Shown: piece by piece, positions 9,603-28,269 of the stretch
Numbering within the stretch: the stretch's first letter is position 1
Layout: each line of letters opens with the position of its first letter
NCBI GenBank assembly: GCA_943704425.1
Contig: CALSCP010002666.1
Coordinates: 1-36,152, forward strand
DNA length: 36,152 nt
DNA from: Ministeria vibrans ATCC 50519
Taxonomy: Eukaryota; Protista; Filasterea
Direction: 5' to 3'
The notes under the pieces: model-generated
Told to the model about the DNA's origin: nothing
The model's input: the letters and a program-made list of their open reading frames with translations, nothing else
Database searches by the model: none
Made by a program: the position numbers and the translations under genes

Positions 9603-10346
9603 TTACATTTTCTTCATAGCCGCTCTGACTGCTTGGTCGTCGCACACAAGGAAGCCCTTCATCATGGAATGAATCTGTCGTGCAATATGGTCGTCATCGG
9701 ACTGCGAACCCCTTAGAATGGCTCGTAACGCGTCTAAATTACTCTCTGCAATGAGCTTGAGGTGCTTGTCGTCTTGCTGTATGAGGTCGAGCATGTTGCG
9801 TCGATCGAGTCCCATCGCGAGATAGGTGATCACCTTGTCGTCGGAGAACATCGGCTCCAGTTGCCCTTCAAAGTCAACCAAGCCAAACTTGCGCGCCGAC
9901 TTAAGATAACCAATCACCGCAGCATACTTGTCTTGCAGAACTTCAAAATGAGGGTCGCGAAGTGCGACCGCAATATTGACACACTTGAGCTCCTTGAAGG
10001 TGAATGACTCGTCGAGTGATTGCATGCGCACAAGCTCACCCACGTCCGAAATGAAAGCCAACATGTTGAGCACAGTGGCAAATTGACCTGGGAGCGCTCG
10101 GTCCATTGCTCTCTGTGTTGGCTTGCCCTTCTTAAAGAAGTCCTCGCCCGCCTCGCTCTTGGCCAGTTCGTAATGTTCCTCCTGACCAATGTACACCTTC
10201 GGATCTGCTAGGGGGTTTCGACGACGCAGTGCCATCTCTGTCGAGATACGTCGATTGTGCTCGTCGATCAAGGAGTGAATTTCGCGCGTGCTTGCGTCGA
10301 CCCCCTCACTCGACTGACTCGAGTCCGCGCTCCGTCCGAACGACAT
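9603..10346 (-). CDS. Costars-domain protein resembling ABRA/STARS (actin-binding Rho-activating protein); 3' end may splice onward to about 9560
   Basis: VIGYLKSARKFGLVDFEGQL...DDKVITYL resembles the ABRA C-terminus as I recall it (VVGILMRARKHGLVDFEGEML...DDHVVITL). A possible intron GTAATA...ctaac...cAG overlaps the stop codon. Confidence 0.7.
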   Translation of the reverse strand: MSFGRSADSSQSSEGVDASTREIHSLIDEHNRRISTEMALRRRNPLADPKVYIGQEEHYELAKSEAGEDFFKKGKPTQRAMDRALPGQFATVLNMLAFISDVGELVRMQSLDESFTFKELKCVNIAVALRDPHFEVLQDKYAAVIGYLKSARKFGLVDFEGQLEPMFSDDKVITYLAMGLDRRNMLDLIQQDDKHLKLIAESNLDALRAILRGSQSDDDHIARQIHSMMKGFLVCDDQAVRAAMKKM

Positions 10347-19506: not shown

Positions 19507-19688
19507 CGCGAGCAGAAGTAATAATGCATTCAAATTCATAATAATAATAATAATTTTAAAAAAAATTATGATAATAAATTTATTATTATAATAACAAGAC
19601 GTATTAATATAATAATAATTAAAAGGTTGTGTGCTCTCTTTACTCCTCCTACTCTCTCCCTCTCCTTCTCTTTCTCTCGGCCGCGCTC

Positions 19689-22297
19689 TCACTTGCCCTT
19701 CATTTGCGCACGCTTCTTCATGAGCTCCTGCATAAAGCCAGAGGTGGGCGCGGCAGCTTCGCTCTCATCGTCACCGCCGGGCGGTGGGGGCGGCGGGGGC
19801 GGACCACCCGCCCCAGACGGAGGTGGCGGCGGGGCGCCGGCATCGGAGGGACCGGGCGGTGGCGGTGGGGGAGGAGGACCGCCCACGCCGCCAGGAGGTG
19901 GGGGCGGAGGAGGTGCAGGGGCCCCTCCAGCGTTGCCTCCGGGTGGCGGTGGAGGTGCCGGGCCACCGCCAGAGCTCGATGGTGCCATGGGCGCAGATGC
20001 AGTTACAGTTGTCTTCTTCAGCAGTGGCGCCGCTCCCATCATCTTAGGCTCGACCTTCTTACGTGCACCTGCTGGTCCCACGCTACACACAAAGAAAAAG
20101 ACACAACAACAGAAGTGAGACAAGGCCAGACGTGAGGCGAGACGTGACGACGTACCCAAAGGCACGGTTCATGACGCTGTCCTTGGATCCGGCTGCATTG
20201 TGCGTGACTCGCCACAGAAAGTAGGCGTTGAGGTCGATCGGCTGAAAGTACTTGCTAAAATAATGTGCTCGTACTTTCAAAACCTAAACAAAAAAACATA
20301 TTAATTTTATTGTTATTGTTACGTCTTATTAAATTTTTCCTATTTTTGTTGTTGTTAATGATAATGTACCTCAAACTCGCGACGCTTCTTGTTGAGTCTG
20401 CGCATGCCATACTTGTCGATAATCTCGGCGAGTCCGCCCTGGAACACTTCGTCGTTGTCAAAGTCGTATACGTGAAACTCGCGAAATGCCTTCTCTTGCT
20501 CGGGCGTGAACGATGGGCGCTGTCCGCCCTGCGTCGTCGCTCCGCCCCACGCACCCGACTTCATGGCAAATGACCCCGTTGCCATGCCACCCGCCTGCGG
20601 TCCGTACGACGCTGCAAACGACTGCCCCATCGCCGCCGGTGTCATCCCCGCTGCACCTGGCGGCATAATCGACCCGGCTCCCGGTCGCATCATAGACTGC
20701 ATGCCGGGCATTGTTGTCGTTTGCATGAACGACCCACCTCCCATCATTCCCATCTGTTGTTGTTGTTGCTGCAATTGTTGTTGTTGCATCATCTGTTGTT
20801 GCTGTTGTTGCATTTGTTGCTGTTGCATCATTTGTTGTTGCTGCATCATCTGTTGTTGTTGTTGCTGTTGTGGGTGCATAAACGATCCCTGCGGCATCAT
20901 TCCCATTTGTGGCATCATCTGTTGCTGTGGATGCTGCATCATCATCGAACCACCACCCATCATCATCTGTTGTGACGTCGGTTGCATCATGCTACCCATG
21001 CCTTGACCACCACCTGCTCCTCCCATGCCCATGCCTGGCTGCATCATACCCATGCCCGATTGCATCGTGTCCATGCCTGGCTGCACCATGCCCATGCCCG
21101 ACTGCATCGTACCCATGCCTGGCTGCATCGTACCCATGCCTGACTGCATCGTACCCATGCCTGACTGCATCGATCCCATGCCCATTGAGGCGCCCCGGTC
21201 CATCATTCCCTGCTGAGGTTGATGTTGATGTTGCTGCTGGTGCTGGTGCTGGTGCATCGGTGGTCTCTGTTGCATGGGTGGTGATGACATTGCCTGGGGA
21301 TCGGGGCGGCGCGTTGACGTGGCCGCTGGCGGAGGATTCTTCTGCTTGCCCTTCTTCGTCGACTGTTTCTTGCCCTGGAACATGTGCTCTTGGAGCTGTG
21401 CATCAAACAGCACGATGAGCTCGTCGGGGTCCTCGCATTGCACAATGTGCACCAGCGTCTTGTCCGTCATGGTGTCGTGCGTCATAAAGGCAACCAGGTT
21501 GCGGAACTGCGGAAAGCGCGCATCCTCGGGCAGTTGGCTCACAAACGACACATGGTCCATGCTGTAGGCCGCCATCACATGCTTGTCAAATGCATCCAGT
21601 ACCTCTATCGCCGACGACGAGACCGTCAGAAACACTTTGGTCGGCTGCGCACCAAACGAGAGAGAACACACAGTTGGTGAGTATTTCATCGGCGCTGTTT
21701 CAGTGCGACACCAGCACGCCATTCCAACGCGCACGACACACAGCAGTAAACGGACAAGGGTCGCCCCCCACCCCTATCCACCTGCTCCATCGCGACCACA
21801 TATCGCCTTCCGATGATCGGACGTCAAACGTAAAAAAAAATCCAAAGTGGACAGTTTGCGCACGACTCTAGCGACATGCAGGGCCGGCGCTCGCTCCACA
21901 GCACTATACGGCCGTATATAAACCGCTTGGCATCGCGCGCAAAGTTTCAAAAGACGCTCTTATCGTGAGCTGTTTTTAGAAGTGAGAACTTGAATCGCGA
22001 TAAAAAAAAAAAAAAAAAAGGGGNNNNNNNNNNCTCAGTGGCTGAGCTGGAAGCTGTAGCTCAAAAAAGCCGGGGTTGAAAAAAGGGAGAGAGAGAGCGA
22101 AAAAGAGAAAGAAAGAACCCCTCGAAAATAGCAGTGCCACACGGGGTGGTGGGATGGCGTACCGGGACTTGGCGAGCGCGGATCTGCTCGAAGCCAAGCA
22201 GCGCCGTCTCCAGCAGATGACTGTCCGGCACCTCAGCCGTTCCCAGATGCCGCACAAGAAAGCAGCCAGCATCGTCCTTTGAGCCTTTGCCACCCAT
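19689..22297 (-). CDS. PTB-cluster paralogue A: myristoylation signal, PTB-like domain, Q/M-rich region, shared helical domain, LKKT motif, polyproline, FAB-like C-terminus; exons 22297-22163, 21644-20370, 20283-20156, 20082-19689; 643 aa
   Basis: MGGKGS start; FLVRHLGTAEV...VFLTVSSSAIEV...VSFVS...LVAFMT...VHIVQC; FREFHVYDFDNDEVFQGG...KVRAHYFSKYFQPIDLNAYFLW; GFMQELMKKR. Phases consistent, but the first intron spans an N gap. Confidence 0.8.
21025..21180 (-). repeat. Coding 21-bp tandem repeat encoding (MGxMQ[S/P]G)n, next to a poly-Q tract at about 20755-20870
   Basis: About 7 degenerate units visible in both DNA and translation. Confidence 0.85.
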
Positions 22298-22443
22298 GTC
22301 AATGCCTGATACTACTGATTGATTCTTCGATCGACAATGATAAGAAAATTTAAAATTATGACTATTTCTATATTCGACAATATCGCCGATCATTTGAGAA
22401 CTTTGAAGTCATTAATTGTTGTTCACACTTCACAGTTTTGTTG
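22298..22443. promoter_or_regulatory. Putative compact bidirectional promoter/5' UTR region between PTB paralogues A and B
   Basis: Head-to-head ATGs separated by only 146 bp of AT-rich DNA. Confidence 0.55.
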
Positions 22444-23902
22444 ATGGGACAGGGACAGGGGAAGCATGCGTCAATGACGTCACAGTCCAAGGGCTACTTG
22501 GGCACGGTGGACGTGGAGTATTTGGGTGCGGCCCAGGTGAAAGGCGAGCCAACGTCGCTCGATGCGCTTGTCGGTGCCTTTTACGAAATTTCGCGCGCTC
22601 GCATCGCCGCGCGTCCCGTGCGCATTGCCCTGCCGACAACCCGAGAATCTGTGTGCTTCCTGGACGTCGCGGCACGCACGGAACTCATGAAGCTCGACCG
22701 TACAACGCTGCTGTGTGCCGTTGAACTTCCCCCCGCCAAGTTTGCATCGGCCGCCGCGCAGGGCATCGTCCTGCTCTCCACCGTCGACCGCCTCCAAAAG
22801 GTGGCCATGTGCCACGCACTCGTCTGCGGCGGCAAGGCTGCCGAGCTCGTCGACATTGTGAGCGACCTGGTGCGTCTTGAATCGGGCGGAGGCACACGCC
22901 CGTCGCACACGCCAGACGCCGCCGGAATGGCCATAGACCGCATGAAACAACAGCAGGGTCAACGGATGGCTGCCTACGAGTCCAAGCAACACCAAATGAG
23001 ACTCCAGCAGCAACAACAGGAGCAGCTTCGTCGAATCGCTCACCTTGCGCACACCAACGCCATGATGGGCGACGCAGCAGCCTCCGCCATGCCCCAGGAA
23101 CCCTCCTACGAGCTGTTCGAGTCCACAGCGACTCCTCAGGTGGCACCCGGCCAACTTCTGTCGCCGTACACTCTCAACGAAGACGAGCGCGCCAAGGAGG
23201 AGCTGGAGCGAGCCAAGGCCAAAGATGCGGCACTTGCTCTCGAGAAAAAGAACCTCGTCTTCGATCCGTACGCCGAGGACGGCAGTGCCCCTCTTACACC
23301 CAAGATGCAGGATAAGTTTGTGCGTTTCCACACGTACGATTGGAAGAAGGACAAAAAGTACGAGCAGGGCACCCAGGCGGTCGTCCACAAGTACAACCTC
23401 GACGCCCTCCCGCCTGCCCGCTTTCAGGAGGAGCTCGTCAAGATTCGCGCCCATTATTACAACAAATTCATCGAGTCCTTTGATCTTGAAGCTTACCGCC
23501 AGTGGCTTGCAGGCTCGCAGTAAGGACCCCGCGCAACACACCACATCGTACTGACTCAGACCTTCTCTTTGTAGACAACCATTCCAAGGCACCGCAGCCC
23601 CTACTGGTGGAGCTGCTGGAGGCGTACCCGCCCCAATGGGTGGAACACTCAGCGGATCAATGGGAGCAGGCATGGGCGGTATGGGTGGCACAGGTGTGGG
23701 TATGGGCATGGGCATGGCGCCGACCGGTGTGTACGGCACAATGCCGATGCAGTCCATGCAGATGATGCAGCAGCCGATGATGTTGCCCATGCAGTCCATG
23801 CAGATGCAGGCTCCTCAGGCCATGCCGCAAATGTACATGCAACCTCAGCAGCAGCAGCAGCAGTACCCGTGGAACGGCGGGAATGGATCCATGATGTGGT
23901 GA
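22444..23902 (+). CDS. PTB-cluster paralogue B: MG start, PTB-like domain, Q-rich coil, shared helical domain, M/G/Q-rich tail; exons 22444-23519 and 23575-23902; 467 aa
   Basis: MGQGQG; VDVEYLGAAQV...CHALVC; FVRFHTYDWKKDKKYEQG...KIRAHYYNKFIESFDLEAYRQW. A GTAAGG...tttgtAG intron joins ORF 23636-23902 in frame. Confidence 0.82.
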
Positions 23903-24209
23903 TCTTTCTCTTGTGTTGTAATGAATAATGAATAATGAATAATCCAAAAAAAATAATAATTATTATTATTATTATTATTATTTGAGTTCGTGTGGGTTTC
24001 GTTCTCACGTTCTGCATCGCTGTGCCTACGTATCCATCCTTGGTGGCGTGTAGTCGTGTACTAGGCTTTGTCGCCCACGCACCTCTTGGCTCCCACGACA
24101 CTCAGCACGAACAACACACACAAAAAAAAAAGAAAAAAAAAAGGAGGCTTTTTATAGAAGCTCTCGCAGTTGGCGCACAAGACTTGCTTGGGGACCTTCT
24201 CACGCGACC

Positions 24210-27200
24210 ATGGGCAACCAGCTTGGGCGGGAGAACATCGCCGAGGGCGACTTCTTTCCCGTCACCTATCTGGGCAGCAGCTACGTCGAGACGCGCACCA
24301 ACCTCGATGCAGCCATGGAGGCGCTTGCGGCCGTCCTCTCGCGAACGCCGGTGCACCGACGCATGGTGGTGTACGTCAGCGGCCATGGCATGTCGCTGAT
24401 AGCGGCCGAGACCGAGAAGGAAGTCGCGCGCTATCCGTTTGCCCGCATTGCACTGTGCACCCAACTGCCAAACAGCCCGCAAATGCCCCTCTACAACAAC
24501 CTCCTTGCCATCATTGCACTCGACAGCCTCAGCGGCGCCAACAACTGCCACATCTTCCAGGCGCAGTCGCCCTTCGAGGTCGTCCAGTCCTTTGACATGT
24601 ACCTCCACTCGGCCATTAGCCAAGTGGGCGGCGGTCCCGGTGCCGCCGCTGCTGCTGCTGCTGCTGCAAACGCCGGCAGAAGATTTCGCCTGCAAGACGA
24701 CGACACGTCCTTCCTTGACGACGACGACGACGATGATGATGATGACAACCTCTATCGTCCTGCCGCTCACTCACATCACGGTGAGAGACACGCTCACTTT
24801 GCCGACGAAGATCCCTCGGGCATCCTCCGTCGTGGCTACGGCACCCCCTCCGCCGCGACCAATGCCGAGCGATTTGCCCAACCTCGCGTACTCTACGTTG
24901 ACGCCGAACGAGACGCTGCCTATCGCGAATTTCACACCTACAACTTCACCGGTGACGACGTCTTCATGACGGGCGTCGTCGAGGTGGTGGACGCCCTCAA
25001 AATCGACACAATCCAGGACGAACTGGAACGCGACTTTGAAATTATGAAAATCAAGGCGCACTACTTCTCGCGCTACTTTGCCGACGTCGACCTCAACGAA
25101 TACTACCAGTGGCGCGTCGGTCGCGACGCCAACGGCTATCCTCTAGGCAAGGGTCCCGACCGTCCCTCGCGAGAAAACTCTACCGTGGCATCCGTCGCTC
25201 GCGCCGACACTATCCACAGCACAGGCGGTGGTGGTGCTCCTCCTCCACCTCCTCCTTCTGGTCCCGACGATGGTGGTGCACCCGCACCCCCTCCTCCTCC
25301 CCCACCCGGTGGTGGTCCCGATGTGCCGGGTCCCCCCCCACCGCCCCCTCCCGGTATGATGGGCGGTATGATGGGTGCAGGCGGGGCAGGCGGATTTGCC
25401 GCCATGATTGCCGGTGCCAAACTGAAAAAGTCAGCTGGCGAAGGCGGTGGCGGCAGTGGTAGTGGCGCTGGCGCTGGCGCTGGCTCGGACTCTCAAAAGG
25501 GCCTCGGAGGTGCCTCGATGATGGAGGAAGTGCTGCGCCGACGTGAAGAAATGCGCAAAAAGGGTGCAGGTCTTATCAGCGACAAGGCATCGCTCGAGAA
25601 GGGCGGCAACCGCACACCGGCTGAGGACCCGCTCTTGGCGGCTCGTGCACGTCTCAAAAACCGCACCGGAGGCGTCTCCACCGGCGCCAACACAAACCTC
25701 GATGCAGACGCACCTCCTCCACCCCCTCCACCCGGTGGCAGTTCCAGTGCACGCAACAACAACCACAGCGACGACTTTGCGCCGCCACCGCCACCACCGG
25801 GTCTCTTTGCCGCCGCTGCCTTCAGCAAGACCTCCAAATCCACATCGGCAACGTCGACGACAAATGCCTCTTCGTCCTTCTCTCCACCTCCTCCGCCTCC
25901 TCCGTCGGCCCTCGCTTCGGACGCACCCCCTCCGCCACCGCTTGCTGCTGCCACCTCGGTAGCGGCTGCCAAGGCCAAGTCGCCTCCTGCAGGTGCCGTC
26001 AACGTCATGGCCAGCCGGGATCCCGTCGTCGTTCAGCGCTCAGACTCGATGAAGGCCGTGCCGCCCTCTTCCGCGACCGTCGATTCCCCACCGCCGCCAC
26101 CACCGGCAGCGACGGGACGTGCGCCGCCCATTTCACGCTCTGGAAGCATTGCGGACCAGCTCAGACCAAAGGGTGGTGCGGGTGTGCAGCGCAGCAACAC
26201 AATGAAGCCGGGCGTCGACGTGGACTGGCGACCCGACATGTCCGAGTTTGACGTGGTCTTTCTGGGAGCAACTGAAATTTCGCGGGTGGACCGCACCACA
26301 TGCAACCTTGCACGCGATAAGGTGCTCACGGCCACAATCCAGGCCAAGCCCATGTTGGTCGTGTTCCAAGACAAGGGCATCTCCGTGACAGACAAGTCCA
26401 AGTCGCGCACATTTGTGCAGGTCGACCTGGCTCTCATTGGCTACTCGGCCATCCTAACGCGCTTCAACGAGAACATGGGCTGCTTCTGTGTGGTCGCGCA
26501 GGATGTGGGCGATCGCAATCCTCTCTGCTTGCTCTTCAAGACGGAAGATCCCGAATGGGTCATGCAAACCTTCTTTAAGAAGTCGCGCGAGTTCAAGACG
26601 CGCATGAAGATTGATCTGGGCAAAAAGGAAGACCGCACGCGCAAGATGGGCAAGCAGCCCAAGACTCAGCAAATGCACGTCGCCGAAGATGGCTCGCTGG
26701 AGCGTGGGCCCTCGTCGGCCCAAGACAAGGCACCCGCGGCGAAATTGGCGCAGAACGCTCGTTCGAGCACTCGCGAGCGCGAAGAGCGCTTTCCCTCGCC
26801 TGCAGCCGCACTCAGTGGCGTCACCGAAGAGGCCGAACCCGCATCACCTGCGCCCGTACGTGCCCCCCCTTCTATCACCACGTCGCCTCCACTGCCCGAT
26901 CCCAGTGCCTCCTCTCCCGCCAACGTATCGCCACCGTCGACGCGCGTGAACATTGTCAAATCAGCCACGGTCGACTCGGTGACACCGCCCGACGAGCTGC
27001 CCTCACAAGCGGCCCTCGACCGCATGCAAGAGGAGCGCGACATGGCCGCAAACTTGGCAGCCGCCGCGGCCATTGATGCAGCGCTTGCGGGCCAGGAATC
27101 TTCCACGTCGCTTGCCAAGGCGAACGGCAAGGGCGATTCACCTTTTGGCATGCCGCCGGCCATCGCGGAGGAGACAGAACCTGAGGCCAAGACGCCCGAC

Positions 27201-27770
27201 GTCACCTCGTCGTTGGCTCCGCCACCCGCAACAAGCATGTTCAGCAACGATCCGACCTTTGAGGACAACCGTTCTATCGGATCAACGGGCTCGCCCAAGG
27301 TGAAACGGAAGGAAGAGAAGGAGCGTGCAAAGAGAGAGGCGCGCGAGGCAAAAGAGCGCGAAAAGGAAGCCAAGGAGCGCGAGAAGGAGGCGCTCAAGGC
27401 GAAGAAGGACGCCGACAGGAAGCGAAAGAAGCACGCTCCCAAATCGCCGGCAGCCTCCATCCGCAGCACTGTCTCCAGCAACGGCGGCGGTGGCGGCGGT
27501 GGTGGATTCATGAAGCCTCCGTCGGCAACGCGCGCCTGGGGCGACGACAGCGACGAAGAAGACCAGGTCATGGCCAATGTGCACGAGACGAAGCGCCTGC
27601 AAGCGGAAATGCTGCGCGAGAAGAGCGTCCTCAAGGGTTACATCTCCCTCATGAAGATGGCCAAGAAAGGCTCCAAGGAACGCTACAATGCCGAGCAGCT
27701 CGTGGCCGCGTCCGAGGCCAAGATTGAGCGTCTCAAGCGCGATCTCACGCAAGTGTCCAGTGGCTGGTGA
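24210..27770 (+). CDS. PTB-cluster paralogue C: MG start, PTB-like domain, shared helical domain, polyproline, VASP-like GAB-FAB, polyproline, second PTB-like domain, coiled coils; single exon; 1186 aa
   Basis: Uninterrupted ORF. FPVTYLGSSYV...CHIFQA; YREFHTYNFTGDDVF...KIKAHYFSRYFADVDLNEYYQW; GFAAMIAGAKLKKS...SMMEEVLRRR; FDVVFLGATEI...CLLFKT. Confidence 0.88.
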   Translation: MGNQLGRENIAEGDFFPVTYLGSSYVETRTNLDAAMEALAAVLSRTPVHRRMVVYVSGHGMSLIAAETEKEVARYPFARIALCTQLPNSPQMPLYNNLLAIIALDSLSGANNCHIFQAQSPFEVVQSFDMYLHSAISQVGGGPGAAAAAAAAANAGRRFRLQDDDTSFLDDDDDDDDDDNLYRPAAHSHHGERHAHFADEDPSGILRRGYGTPSAATNAERFAQPRVLYVDAERDAAYREFHTYNFTGDDVFMTGVVEVVDALKIDTIQDELERDFEIMKIKAHYFSRYFADVDLNEYYQWRVGRDANGYPLGKGPDRPSRENSTVASVARADTIHSTGGGGAPPPPPPSGPDDGGAPAPPPPPPPGGGPDVPGPPPPPPPGMMGGMMGAGGAGGFAAMIAGAKLKKSAGEGGGGSGSGAGAGAGSDSQKGLGGASMMEEVLRRREEMRKKGAGLISDKASLEKGGNRTPAEDPLLAARARLKNRTGGVSTGANTNLDADAPPPPPPPGGSSSARNNNHSDDFAPPPPPPGLFAAAAFSKTSKSTSATSTTNASSSFSPPPPPPPSALASDAPPPPPLAAATSVAAAKAKSPPAGAVNVMASRDPVVVQRSDSMKAVPPSSATVDSPPPPPPAATGRAPPISRSGSIADQLRPKGGAGVQRSNTMKPGVDVDWRPDMSEFDVVFLGATEISRVDRTTCNLARDKVLTATIQAKPMLVVFQDKGISVTDKSKSRTFVQVDLALIGYSAILTRFNENMGCFCVVAQDVGDRNPLCLLFKTEDPEWVMQTFFKKSREFKTRMKIDLGKKEDRTRKMGKQPKTQQMHVAEDGSLERGPSSAQDKAPAAKLAQNARSSTREREERFPSPAAALSGVTEEAEPASPAPVRAPPSITTSPPLPDPSASSPANVSPPSTRVNIVKSATVDSVTPPDELPSQAALDRMQEERDMAANLAAAAAIDAALAGQESSTSLAKANGKGDSPFGMPPAIAEETEPEAKTPDVTSSLAPPPATSMFSNDPTFEDNRSIGSTGSPKVKRKEEKERAKREAREAKEREKEAKEREKEALKAKKDADRKRKKHAPKSPAASIRSTVSSNGGGGGGGGFMKPPSATRAWGDDSDEEDQVMANVHETKRLQAEMLREKSVLKGYISLMKMAKKGSKERYNAEQLVAASEAKIERLKRDLTQVSSGW

Positions 27771-28269
27771 ATGAAACCAGAGCTTGTGATACGGAGTGAC
27801 GGTGAGCGGTCACGAAAGAAAGTGCGGCGAGTGAGTGAGGGTAGCATTGAGAGTGTATCAGTTCTCAAAGGAATTTTAAGTTGATTTTTTGAGTGATTGG
27901 ATGTGATGAGTACGTACGAAGTACGGCGTAGTGGATCTCAAAACTTTATCAAGGTGCGTTTTTGTATCTGAAAGACTTCGTGGTTTAATATTTTCAATTG
28001 GACTCTCAGAAAACTGAAAAGTCAGTCATTTTAGATTTTTAGTTCAAGACTTATTTTCCCGACTGATAATCCTTCTCAAAAAGTAGCTCAACTTGCCGCT
28101 ACAATAGAAACTGGGTATGGCGAGTGAGGGAGCGGGGTTTTTTAAATCATGTCCTTTTTCTTTGGGACGAAAAGGGGATAATTTGTAACGTTGACTCACT
28201 AGAGGGATTGCCCATCACTTGTGACAACGCTGACCCGTGCGGCACCATTGCGTGTGACGTGGGNNNNNN

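Follow-up and report, generated by a model that had tools for sequence, protein, structure and literature searches.

Three paralogous genes form a cluster in Ministeria vibrans

The window analyzed here is a stretch of 36,152 nucleotides from the marine protist Ministeria vibrans ATCC 50519 (contig CALSCP010002666.1). Its composition looks eukaryotic, in that coding sequence is GC-rich and spacers are short and AT-rich. At 19689-27770 it holds three paralogous neighboring genes, A on the minus strand and B and C on the plus strand. The predicted protein of each begins with Met-Gly, continues directly into a phosphotyrosine-binding (PTB) domain, and carries further downstream a helical domain common to all three, which corresponds to region X of the PEX39 proteins. 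Polyproline runs and actin-binding-like motifs are found in A and C. All searches described below were made exon by exon, with the exons of A and B kept separate.

Contigs from public sequencing runs were aligned to 19600-24100. Spliced RNA forms were found in runs X1, X5, and X17, the last of which is poly-A RNA, and contigs of the DNA run X19 were colinear with the window across the A/B region. Gene A consists of four exons (22297-22163, 21644-20370, 20283-20156, and 20082-19689; approximately 643 codons). RNA contigs join 22163 to 21644 with 518 nt skipped, 20369/70 to 20282/3, and 20156 to 20082, which places introns 2 and 3 at 20283/4-20368/9 and 20083-20155. In X1, X5, and X17, the borders of intron 1 (21645-22162) read CT..AC on the plus strand, that is, GT..AG on the minus strand. 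Gene B consists of two exons (22444-23519 and 23575-23902; approximately 467 codons) separated by an intron of 55 nt (23520-23574) with GT..AG borders, whose joint from 23519 to 23575 was seen in X1 and X17. Gene C is an uninterrupted open reading frame (ORF) of 1186 codons (24210-27770). Its transcription is indicated by the finding that a fraction of 0.92 of the words sampled from 22400-25400 occur in RNA runs, which covers the first 1.2 kb of C indirectly. The exon numbers of four, two, and one given by the initial annotation are thus confirmed by RNA joints for A and B and agree with the single ORF of C.

An assembly gap at 22024-22033, adjoining a long T run, lies inside intron 1 of A, and the X19 DNA contigs break at the same place, ending at 21992 and resuming at 22034. 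Exon 1 of A is 135 nt long, and exon 2 opens in frame (...RARQVP / PTKVFL...). Because the gap is intronic and is spliced out in three runs, the reading frame of A is untouched and only the length of the intron is uncertain; a disruption of the frame by the gap was thus ruled out. The possibility that A, B, or C are pseudogenes or mis-assemblies was ruled out by the RNA evidence. Several irregularities were seen in the alignments. The X1 RNA contig over B has 30 non-matching letters before 22475, a position 31 nt inside the B coding sequence, with no AG acceptor there; X5 is colinear from 22427, and the mismatch in X1 could mean that the contig is chimeric or that an alternative 5' end exists. 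Contigs of all runs often break or jump in the CAG/ATG-rich repeats of A (20750-20880 and 21230-21260), and the Q/M-rich region encoded there may be variable in length or mis-assembled. Single-base differences between runs at 19885, 20532, 20859, 22305, 22648, 23229, and 23697 look like strain variation. Another short assembly gap (28264-28269) lies beyond the cluster.

The start codons of A and B are 146 bp apart on opposite strands, and C starts 307 bp after B. RNA depth is almost zero within the A/B spacer (22298-22443), which is probably a shared bidirectional promoter. The co-regulation that had been proposed for the cluster is hinted at by this divergent 146-bp spacer and by the shared presence of the genes in RNA runs.

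The N-termini carry a predicted lipid anchor and a PTB domain

The three proteins start with MGGKGSK (A), MGQGQGK (B), and MGNQLGR (C), and the C orthologue P0003, a metagenomic protein described below, starts with MGGQISK. The Met-Gly starts of the initial annotation are read directly in the sequence. No in-frame start was found upstream of B or C, and the 52 open codons upstream of C contain no ATG, GTG, or TTG. An in-frame ATG is present upstream of A at 22393, but RNA depth is close to nil upstream of approximately 22318. The N-myristoylation pattern of PROSITE PS00008 is G-{EDRKHPFYW}-x(2)-[STAGCN]-{P}, and GGKGSK, GQGQGK, GNQLGR, and GGQISK of P0003 all fit it. The N-termini of A, B, and C thus stand in a myristoylation-type context from which a lipid anchor is predicted. 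An NMT gene is present in the genome.

The PTB domain follows directly. In gene A, its first strand and helix are encoded together with the MGGKGSK start in exon 1 (22163-22297; family PTB profile, 8.1e-13) and the remainder at approximately 21390-21644 in exon 2, where Pfam PF00640 (PID) matches at 2.8e-6 with 27.9 bits (cut-off 20.9). In gene C, the domain lies at 24261-24614 and matches PF08416 at 5.5e-9 with 36.6 bits (cut-off 27). The Pfam matches are of the PID/PTB type, with none to the IRS-type PTB model. In a language-model protein atlas, the neighbors of C residues 1-330 were all PID proteins. The domain of B (approximately 22492-22881) gave no match in Pfam. The N-terminus of B aligns along its full length with those of A, C, and P0003, with the common pattern FLV.YLG.A.V ... 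QLP ... CH..QC...ELV..F. A profile of these four domains matched the sequences of solved PTB domains, those of AIDA-1 (4.5e-9) and Numb (6e-8) best, followed by X11, Shc, GULP1, and ARH within a range extending to 1e-5. An AlphaFold2 (AF2) model of the B domain (pLDDT 62.7) has the PTB order of elements, namely a strand, a helix, six strands, and a helix. The top 50 Foldseek matches of this model were all PTB domains, including Numb, Fe65-PTB2, APPL1, GULP1, and CCM2, with E values of approximately 1e-6, a probability of 1.00, and TM scores of 0.66/0.75. These sequence and model comparisons identify the N-terminal domains of A, B, and C as PTB domains of the Numb/Dab class. The PTB-like fold proposed from the sequence of the window is thereby borne out by Pfam for A and C, by the family profile for all three, and by AF2 and Foldseek for B, and the outcome that would have counted against it, N-termini that do not model as PTB or PH folds, did not arise. 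Numb/Dab-type PTB domains are phosphotyrosine-independent and bind NPxY/F tails and, in many cases, phosphoinositides.

A second PTB domain had also been proposed for C. A strongly conserved domain is indeed present at 26232-26609, where C is 67% identical to P0003, and it is possibly a second PTB. The PTB signals in its sequence are weak (Pfam PID 0.043 and PTB 0.12); an hhalign comparison with the N-terminal PTB profile gave an E value of 0.04 with 117 columns in register, and a search of PDB sequences with this domain gave no match.

The shared helical domain corresponds to PEX39 region X

In BLASTP comparisons, the shared helical domain aligned significantly among all three proteins, as the initial annotation had supposed, with E values of 2e-10 between C and B, 4e-9 between C and A, and 2e-6 between B and A. 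The domain is encoded at 20370-20519 (first half, exon 2; X-profile, 3.1e-8) and 20185-20283 (second half, exon 3 at 20156-20283; 1.1e-6) in gene A, at 23287-23519 at the end of exon 1 in gene B (2.0e-23), and at 24894-25130 in gene C, where hmmsearch delimits it to residues 229-307. When 1.84 billion cluster representatives were searched exhaustively with HMMER, a profile built from all three copies gave 100 matches at E<=1e-3. A Pfam scan of all 100 assigned PF17733 (KPWE_dom) to 56 of them, ECH_2 to 21, and Cyt-b5 to two, and found a PTB domain only in P0003. The proteins with KPWE_dom are typically 130-250 residues long and carry X N-terminally and KPWE C-terminally. The 21 ECH_2 proteins are fungal, and each has two N-terminal X copies; tandem pairs of X were found in 26 matched proteins. 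Among the named matches, which are without exception labeled 'hypothetical', early-diverging fungi, molluscs, and a choanoflagellate are represented.

Region X has been described as an extra N-terminal helical region of PEX39 in fungi, invertebrates, and fishes (PMC12339391). PEX39 (Yjr012c / C6ORF226) contains DUF5572, which ends in an (R/K)PWE motif that binds PEX7 (PMC12339391). The orthologues P0002, P0003, and P0007 carry the precomputed Pfam label PF25871 (HTH_76). The isolated X domains had no Pfam match at E<=10, because the HTH_76 model is missing from the Pfam copy that was used for the scans of A, B, and C. Sequence comparison thus identifies the helical domain of A, B, and C as the region X that long PEX39 proteins and fungal ECH_2 proteins also carry, and the idea that this domain is peculiar to the cluster had to be given up.

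An AF2 model of the X domain, made from a 55-sequence alignment, consists of four helices (pLDDT 87.6). A Foldseek search of the PDB with this model gave no match at E<=0.001, and the best Z score in a wide VIA-align search was 4.0. Judged by its model, X has no recognized look-alike among solved structures, which does not in itself prove a novel fold. In the genome, a broad X profile detected the domain only in A, B, C, and one PEX39-like gene (C2042). This gene (G000:C2042:2207-2605; L005 ORF 1495-2364, minus strand) encodes X (8.4e-8) followed by KPWE_dom (1.2e-9) and a KPWQ-type end, which fits the free-standing PEX39 of the opisthokont-type layout (PMC12339391). PF17733 was not matched in the Pfam scans of A, B, and C, and no [KR]PW[EQD] motif was found in any of their exons. 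Our best guess is that X is a module for protein-protein docking or pairing, because it often occurs in tandem in other proteins (26 with two copies). The hetero-oligomeric scaffold that had been suggested for the three proteins found no support; one complex prediction, with two copies of the X domain of C, scored 0.01 and gave no answer.

A and C contain polyproline and actin-binding-like motifs

Low-complexity regions account for much of A and B, and the composition of the Q/M-rich regions noted initially was confirmed. The region of A (approximately 20445-21254, within exon 2 at 20370-21644) is 24% Q, 20% M, and 18% G. Exon 2 of B (23575-23902), which ends with the stop codon, encodes a low-complexity tail of 21% G, 20% M, and 17% Q, and in exon 1 (22444-23519) a Q-rich, coiled linker separates the PTB domain from X.

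The polyproline and actin-binding-like motifs noted in A and C were also recovered by a motif scan, as polyproline runs and LKKT/LKKS motifs. In C, a region at 25239-25568 resembles the EVH2 region of Ena/VASP proteins. It opens with three polyproline runs (residues 344-381; 25239-25352), followed by residues 394-409, GFAAMIAGAKLKKS (25389-25436). The G-actin-binding (GAB) peptide of human VASP is GLAAAIAGAKLRKVSK (PMC3034019; PMC10340426). When GFAAMIAGAKLKKS of C was compared with the human VASP GAB sequence GLAAAIAGAKLRKV, 10 of 14 positions were identical, including the critical KL[KR]K. Residues 431-453 of C, GGASMMEEVLRRREEMRKK (25500-25568), resemble the F-actin-binding (FAB) site of VASP (PMC10340426), with MMEEV..LRRR of C likened to LMEEM..LARRRK of VASP. 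The two motifs of C are approximately 25 residues apart, within the range of 18-40 residues reported for the GAB-FAB linkers of Ena/VASP proteins (PMC3034019). At the level of motifs, the order in C (proline-rich, GAB-like, FAB-like) is that of EVH2. Both motifs are kept in P0003 amid otherwise low-complexity sequence. Further downstream, C has a second proline-rich region with five polyproline runs (25713-26105) and, beyond the possible second PTB, a Lys/Glu-rich stretch with a helical-looking C-terminal tail (27297-27767).

The last exon of A (19689-20082) encodes a WH2-like LLKKT motif (approximately 20010-20024), five polyproline runs (approximately 19779-19955), and a basic, FAB-like C-terminal helix, GFMQELMKKRAQ (19692-19742), before the stop codon. 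This C-terminal motif recurs in P0007 from another species. On sequence grounds, the Ena/VASP-type motifs appear clear in C and less clear in A.

Searches with the actin-related part of C added little. A phmmer search of the PDB with the GAB/FAB region returned only designer PPR repeats, a spurious match; a search of the genome with the GAB-FAB module returned only one weak match, to an unrelated gene read in the wrong frame; and a protein atlas search with residues 335-480 returned no usable match. At E<=1, Pfam detected no WH1 domain in C and no VASP_tetra domain (PF08776) in the whole genome. Since neither EVH1 nor VASP_tetra is present, A and C would at most work like a part of Ena/VASP and are not members of that family.

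The paralogues are old, and their architecture seems confined to one lineage

Orthologues of the M. vibrans genes were found in other sources. P0002, an intron-free orthologue of A, and P0003, the orthologue of C, come from one JGI metagenome and represent another species. In P0003 the parts follow one another as in C: the MG start comes first, and PTB, X, the polyproline runs, the GAB/FAB motifs, and the second domain come after it. A GC-rich third source, Logan contig L018, encodes a PTB-like region (hhalign, 1.1e-5), X, polyproline, and a C-terminal motif like that of A. A quick maximum-likelihood tree was calculated from 113 X copies, with P0001, which duplicates B, and the split copy of A, for which P0002 stands in, left out. 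The PTB-linked copies of X formed one clade with an SH-aLRT value of 97. We take this grouping to suggest that X became fused to a PTB protein once and that duplication came afterwards. Orthologues of A and C coexist in the metagenome of another species, and therefore the duplication that separated A from C predates that species split. The old duplication put forward initially thus agrees both with the PTB-linked clade and with this coexistence.

PTB and X were seen together in this cluster and in two environmental relatives, with no further such protein among the 100 X-profile matches, and the architecture seems to be confined to this lineage. Homologue searches that started from exon 1 of B and from residues 1-330 and 1-145 of C returned nothing and were of low informativeness, as they missed P0003 too; the first two queries were swamped by low-complexity words at a limit of 8000 candidates, and the third yielded only 441 candidates. 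In the sources searched, neither the combination of PTB and X nor region X outside PEX39 is described, and no protein described there has the complete architecture, in agreement with the view that it is undescribed. The parts themselves, namely PTB, HTH_76/region X, and motifs like those of Ena/VASP, are all known; it is their combination that is unusual and, in those sources, undescribed.

The genome encodes candidate ligands and further PTB genes

Three integrin beta genes are present in the genome, on contigs C2390 (L023), C376 (L021), and C749 (L022). In the C2390 protein, the cytoplasmic tail that comes after a transmembrane segment contains two NPLF motifs, and an exon of the C376 gene ends in NPIY. 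Integrin-type tails with NPxF/Y motifs are classical ligands of Dab/Numb-type PTB domains, and from their motifs the integrin beta tails are candidate ligands of the PTB domains of A, B, and C.

A search of the genome with the PTB profile revealed a fourth paralogue of the MG-PTB type (G000:C1214:41480-46499; L019 4990-10000). Its first exon begins with MGVVTNS, an intron interrupts its PTB domain close to where intron 1 lies in A, and at least nine filamin/ABP280 repeats (Pfam, 1e-111) follow the PTB. It lacks X, and its ORF extends past the stretch that was read. By its domain content, this PTB-filamin protein is a second, independent link of the PTB subfamily to the actin cortex. The same profile detected a more distant, internal PID on C390. 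At a contig end (G000:C1228:34869-35030; L012) lies a WH1/EVH1 gene (2.1e-11) that continues after WH1 with a long stretch rich in proline and alanine and bearing LRK-type motifs; this gene may represent canonical Ena/VASP or the WASP family in the genome. Within the window itself, at a distance of approximately 9 kb from A, B, and C, the minus strand contains a 246-codon ORF (9603-10343) for an actin-associated Costars domain (PF14705, 2.4e-5).

A, B, and C may couple receptor tails to actin elongation

Taken together, these observations are best explained, with a probability of about 0.5, if A, B, and C, a tandem array of old, expressed paralogues, encode membrane-anchored PTB adaptors that couple NPxF/Y tails to the elongation of actin filaments. 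Lipid anchor and PTB domain together would hold the proteins against the plasma membrane on its inner side, where the PTB domains would sit on NPxY/F tails, such as the NPLF motifs of integrin beta, and/or on phosphoinositides. In C and A, the polyproline and GAB/FAB modules would recruit profilin-actin and elongate filaments. B, which lacks an actin module, could act as a competitor or regulator at the same sites. The initial annotation had proposed a scaffold that links NPxY-type tails or phosphoinositides to actin; candidate NPxF/Y ligands, namely integrin beta with two NPLF motifs, do exist in the genome, and the actin and receptor functions are read from motifs. A more ambitious form of this idea, which we regard as doubtful, is that the proteins represent a class of lipid-anchored elongators, in which a PTB domain reading NPxF tails replaces the EVH1 domain of Ena/VASP proteins and X supplies oligomerization or docking instead of the tetramerization coil. 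If it held, a unicellular relative of animals would possess a class of elongators not described before, and the orphan region X would gain its first function.

Several points weigh against coupling of receptor tails to actin elongation. Lipidation, PTB binding, and actin activity are all predicted. The GAB, FAB, and WH2 motifs are short, and the likeness to VASP extends over approximately 14-20 residues; the WH2-like motif of A has no obvious preceding amphipathic helix, and B has no actin motif at all. The missing VASP_tetra is a difficulty because elongation of the Ena/VASP type needs oligomers, and the complex prediction for two X copies of C speaks neither for nor against pairing. The sole known functional context of X, PEX39, is peroxisomal. 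In addition, the intronless structure of C is predicted from its ORF, and its RNA was seen as word coverage.

Among other explanations, it is possible, though we consider it rather unlikely, that A, B, and C are generic PTB docking proteins or scaffolds of the FRS2, Numb, or Dab type in tyrosine-kinase or endocytic signaling, in which the prolines serve as SH3, WW, or EVH1 ligands and the likeness to VASP is due to chance. The myristoyl-PTB N-terminus is the layout of FRS2 (PMC7260276), the nearest solved PTB domains are those of Numb, AIDA-1, X11, Shc, GULP, and ARH, and polyproline is a common ligand of SH3, WW, and EVH1 domains. Chance would nevertheless have to account for a GAB motif identical to that of VASP at 10 of 14 positions and a FAB-like motif at the right distance, both conserved in the orthologue, and for GPPPPP-type runs directly upstream, as in the profilin-recruiting layout of Ena/VASP. 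The opposite extreme, that C is the Ena/VASP orthologue of this lineage with a diverged EVH1 domain misread as PTB, is very improbable. EVH1 and PTB do share a PH-like fold, and the order of targeting domain, proline-rich region, GAB, FAB, and C-terminal helix in C is that of Ena/VASP. The N-terminus of C matches PTB/PID models and none for WH1, however, and the model of B shows the PTB-specific helix between strands 1 and 2. Moreover, separate WH1 genes are present in the genome, no VASP_tetra was matched, and A and B have the same PTB domain without an EVH2-like module. C as a plain Ena/VASP orthologue was rejected on the lack of WH1 and VASP_tetra matches.

The main alternative suggested by X is a peroxisome-linked role, in which A, B, and C act with PTS2/PEX7 import or tether peroxisomes to the membrane or to actin. 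Most X matches (56 of 100) are PEX39-type proteins with KPWE_dom, and the PEX39-like gene of the genome itself has the same X domain. We nevertheless rate this role as distinctly improbable because the PEX7-binding part is missing: the three proteins have neither KPWE_dom nor [KR]PW[EQD], and KPWE is the element that binds PEX7 (PMC12339391). Furthermore, human PEX39 lacks X, so that the core function does not depend on it; ECH_2 and Cyt-b5 proteins carry X as well, as expected of a portable module; and the cortex is the location suggested by the PTB domain, the polyproline runs, and the GAB-like motif.

Significance and relation to known systems

PTB adaptors, integrin adhesion, and actin assembly of the Ena/VASP type belong to the adhesion and signaling toolkit of animals, which predates animals. 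The combination of a predicted lipid anchor, PTB, and an EVH2-like region in this cluster, and of PTB with filamin elsewhere in the genome, would show that modules of this toolkit were shuffled freely. Sequence and model data identify region X as an autonomous, portable four-helix domain on three unrelated types of protein, PEX39, ECH_2 enzymes, and PTB adaptors. With no solved look-alike and such a distribution, its function becomes a defined and testable question, and A, B, and C offer a compact natural construct for probing how receptor tails may be coupled to actin growth.

The N-terminal domains have their best matches of sequence and fold in the adaptors Numb, Dab, ARH, GULP, AIDA-1, and X11, with an identity of only 12-16% to the PTB domains of A, B, and C. 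We know of no adaptor among these that has a lipid anchor together with HTH_76 and EVH2-like motifs. FRS2 and FRS3 (SNT) share with the cluster an N-terminal myristoylation signal directly before the PTB domain and a long, largely disordered tail (PMC7260276). FRS2, on the other hand, has an IRS-type PTB and tyrosine docking sites, whereas the PTB domains of A, B, and C are Numb/Dab-like and their tails carry X, low-complexity sequence, and actin motifs. With PEX39 the three proteins share a homologous domain of approximately 75 residues with the pattern F..F..YDF..D..FQ.G ... K.K.FYYS.F....D...Y..W. They differ in lacking the DUF5572/KPWE part and hence the PEX7-binding motif, and in the position of X, which is N-terminal in PEX39 and lies mid-protein after the PTB domain in A, B, and C. 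The likeness to Ena/VASP consists of polyproline, the GAB motif (10/14), and the FAB-like motif in C, and of LKKT, polyproline, and the FAB-like end in A. In contrast to Ena/VASP, A and C would be targeted by a predicted-myristoylated PTB rather than by EVH1, lack VASP_tetra, have X and, in C, a possible second PTB as extra parts, and in A show the motifs in a rearranged order.

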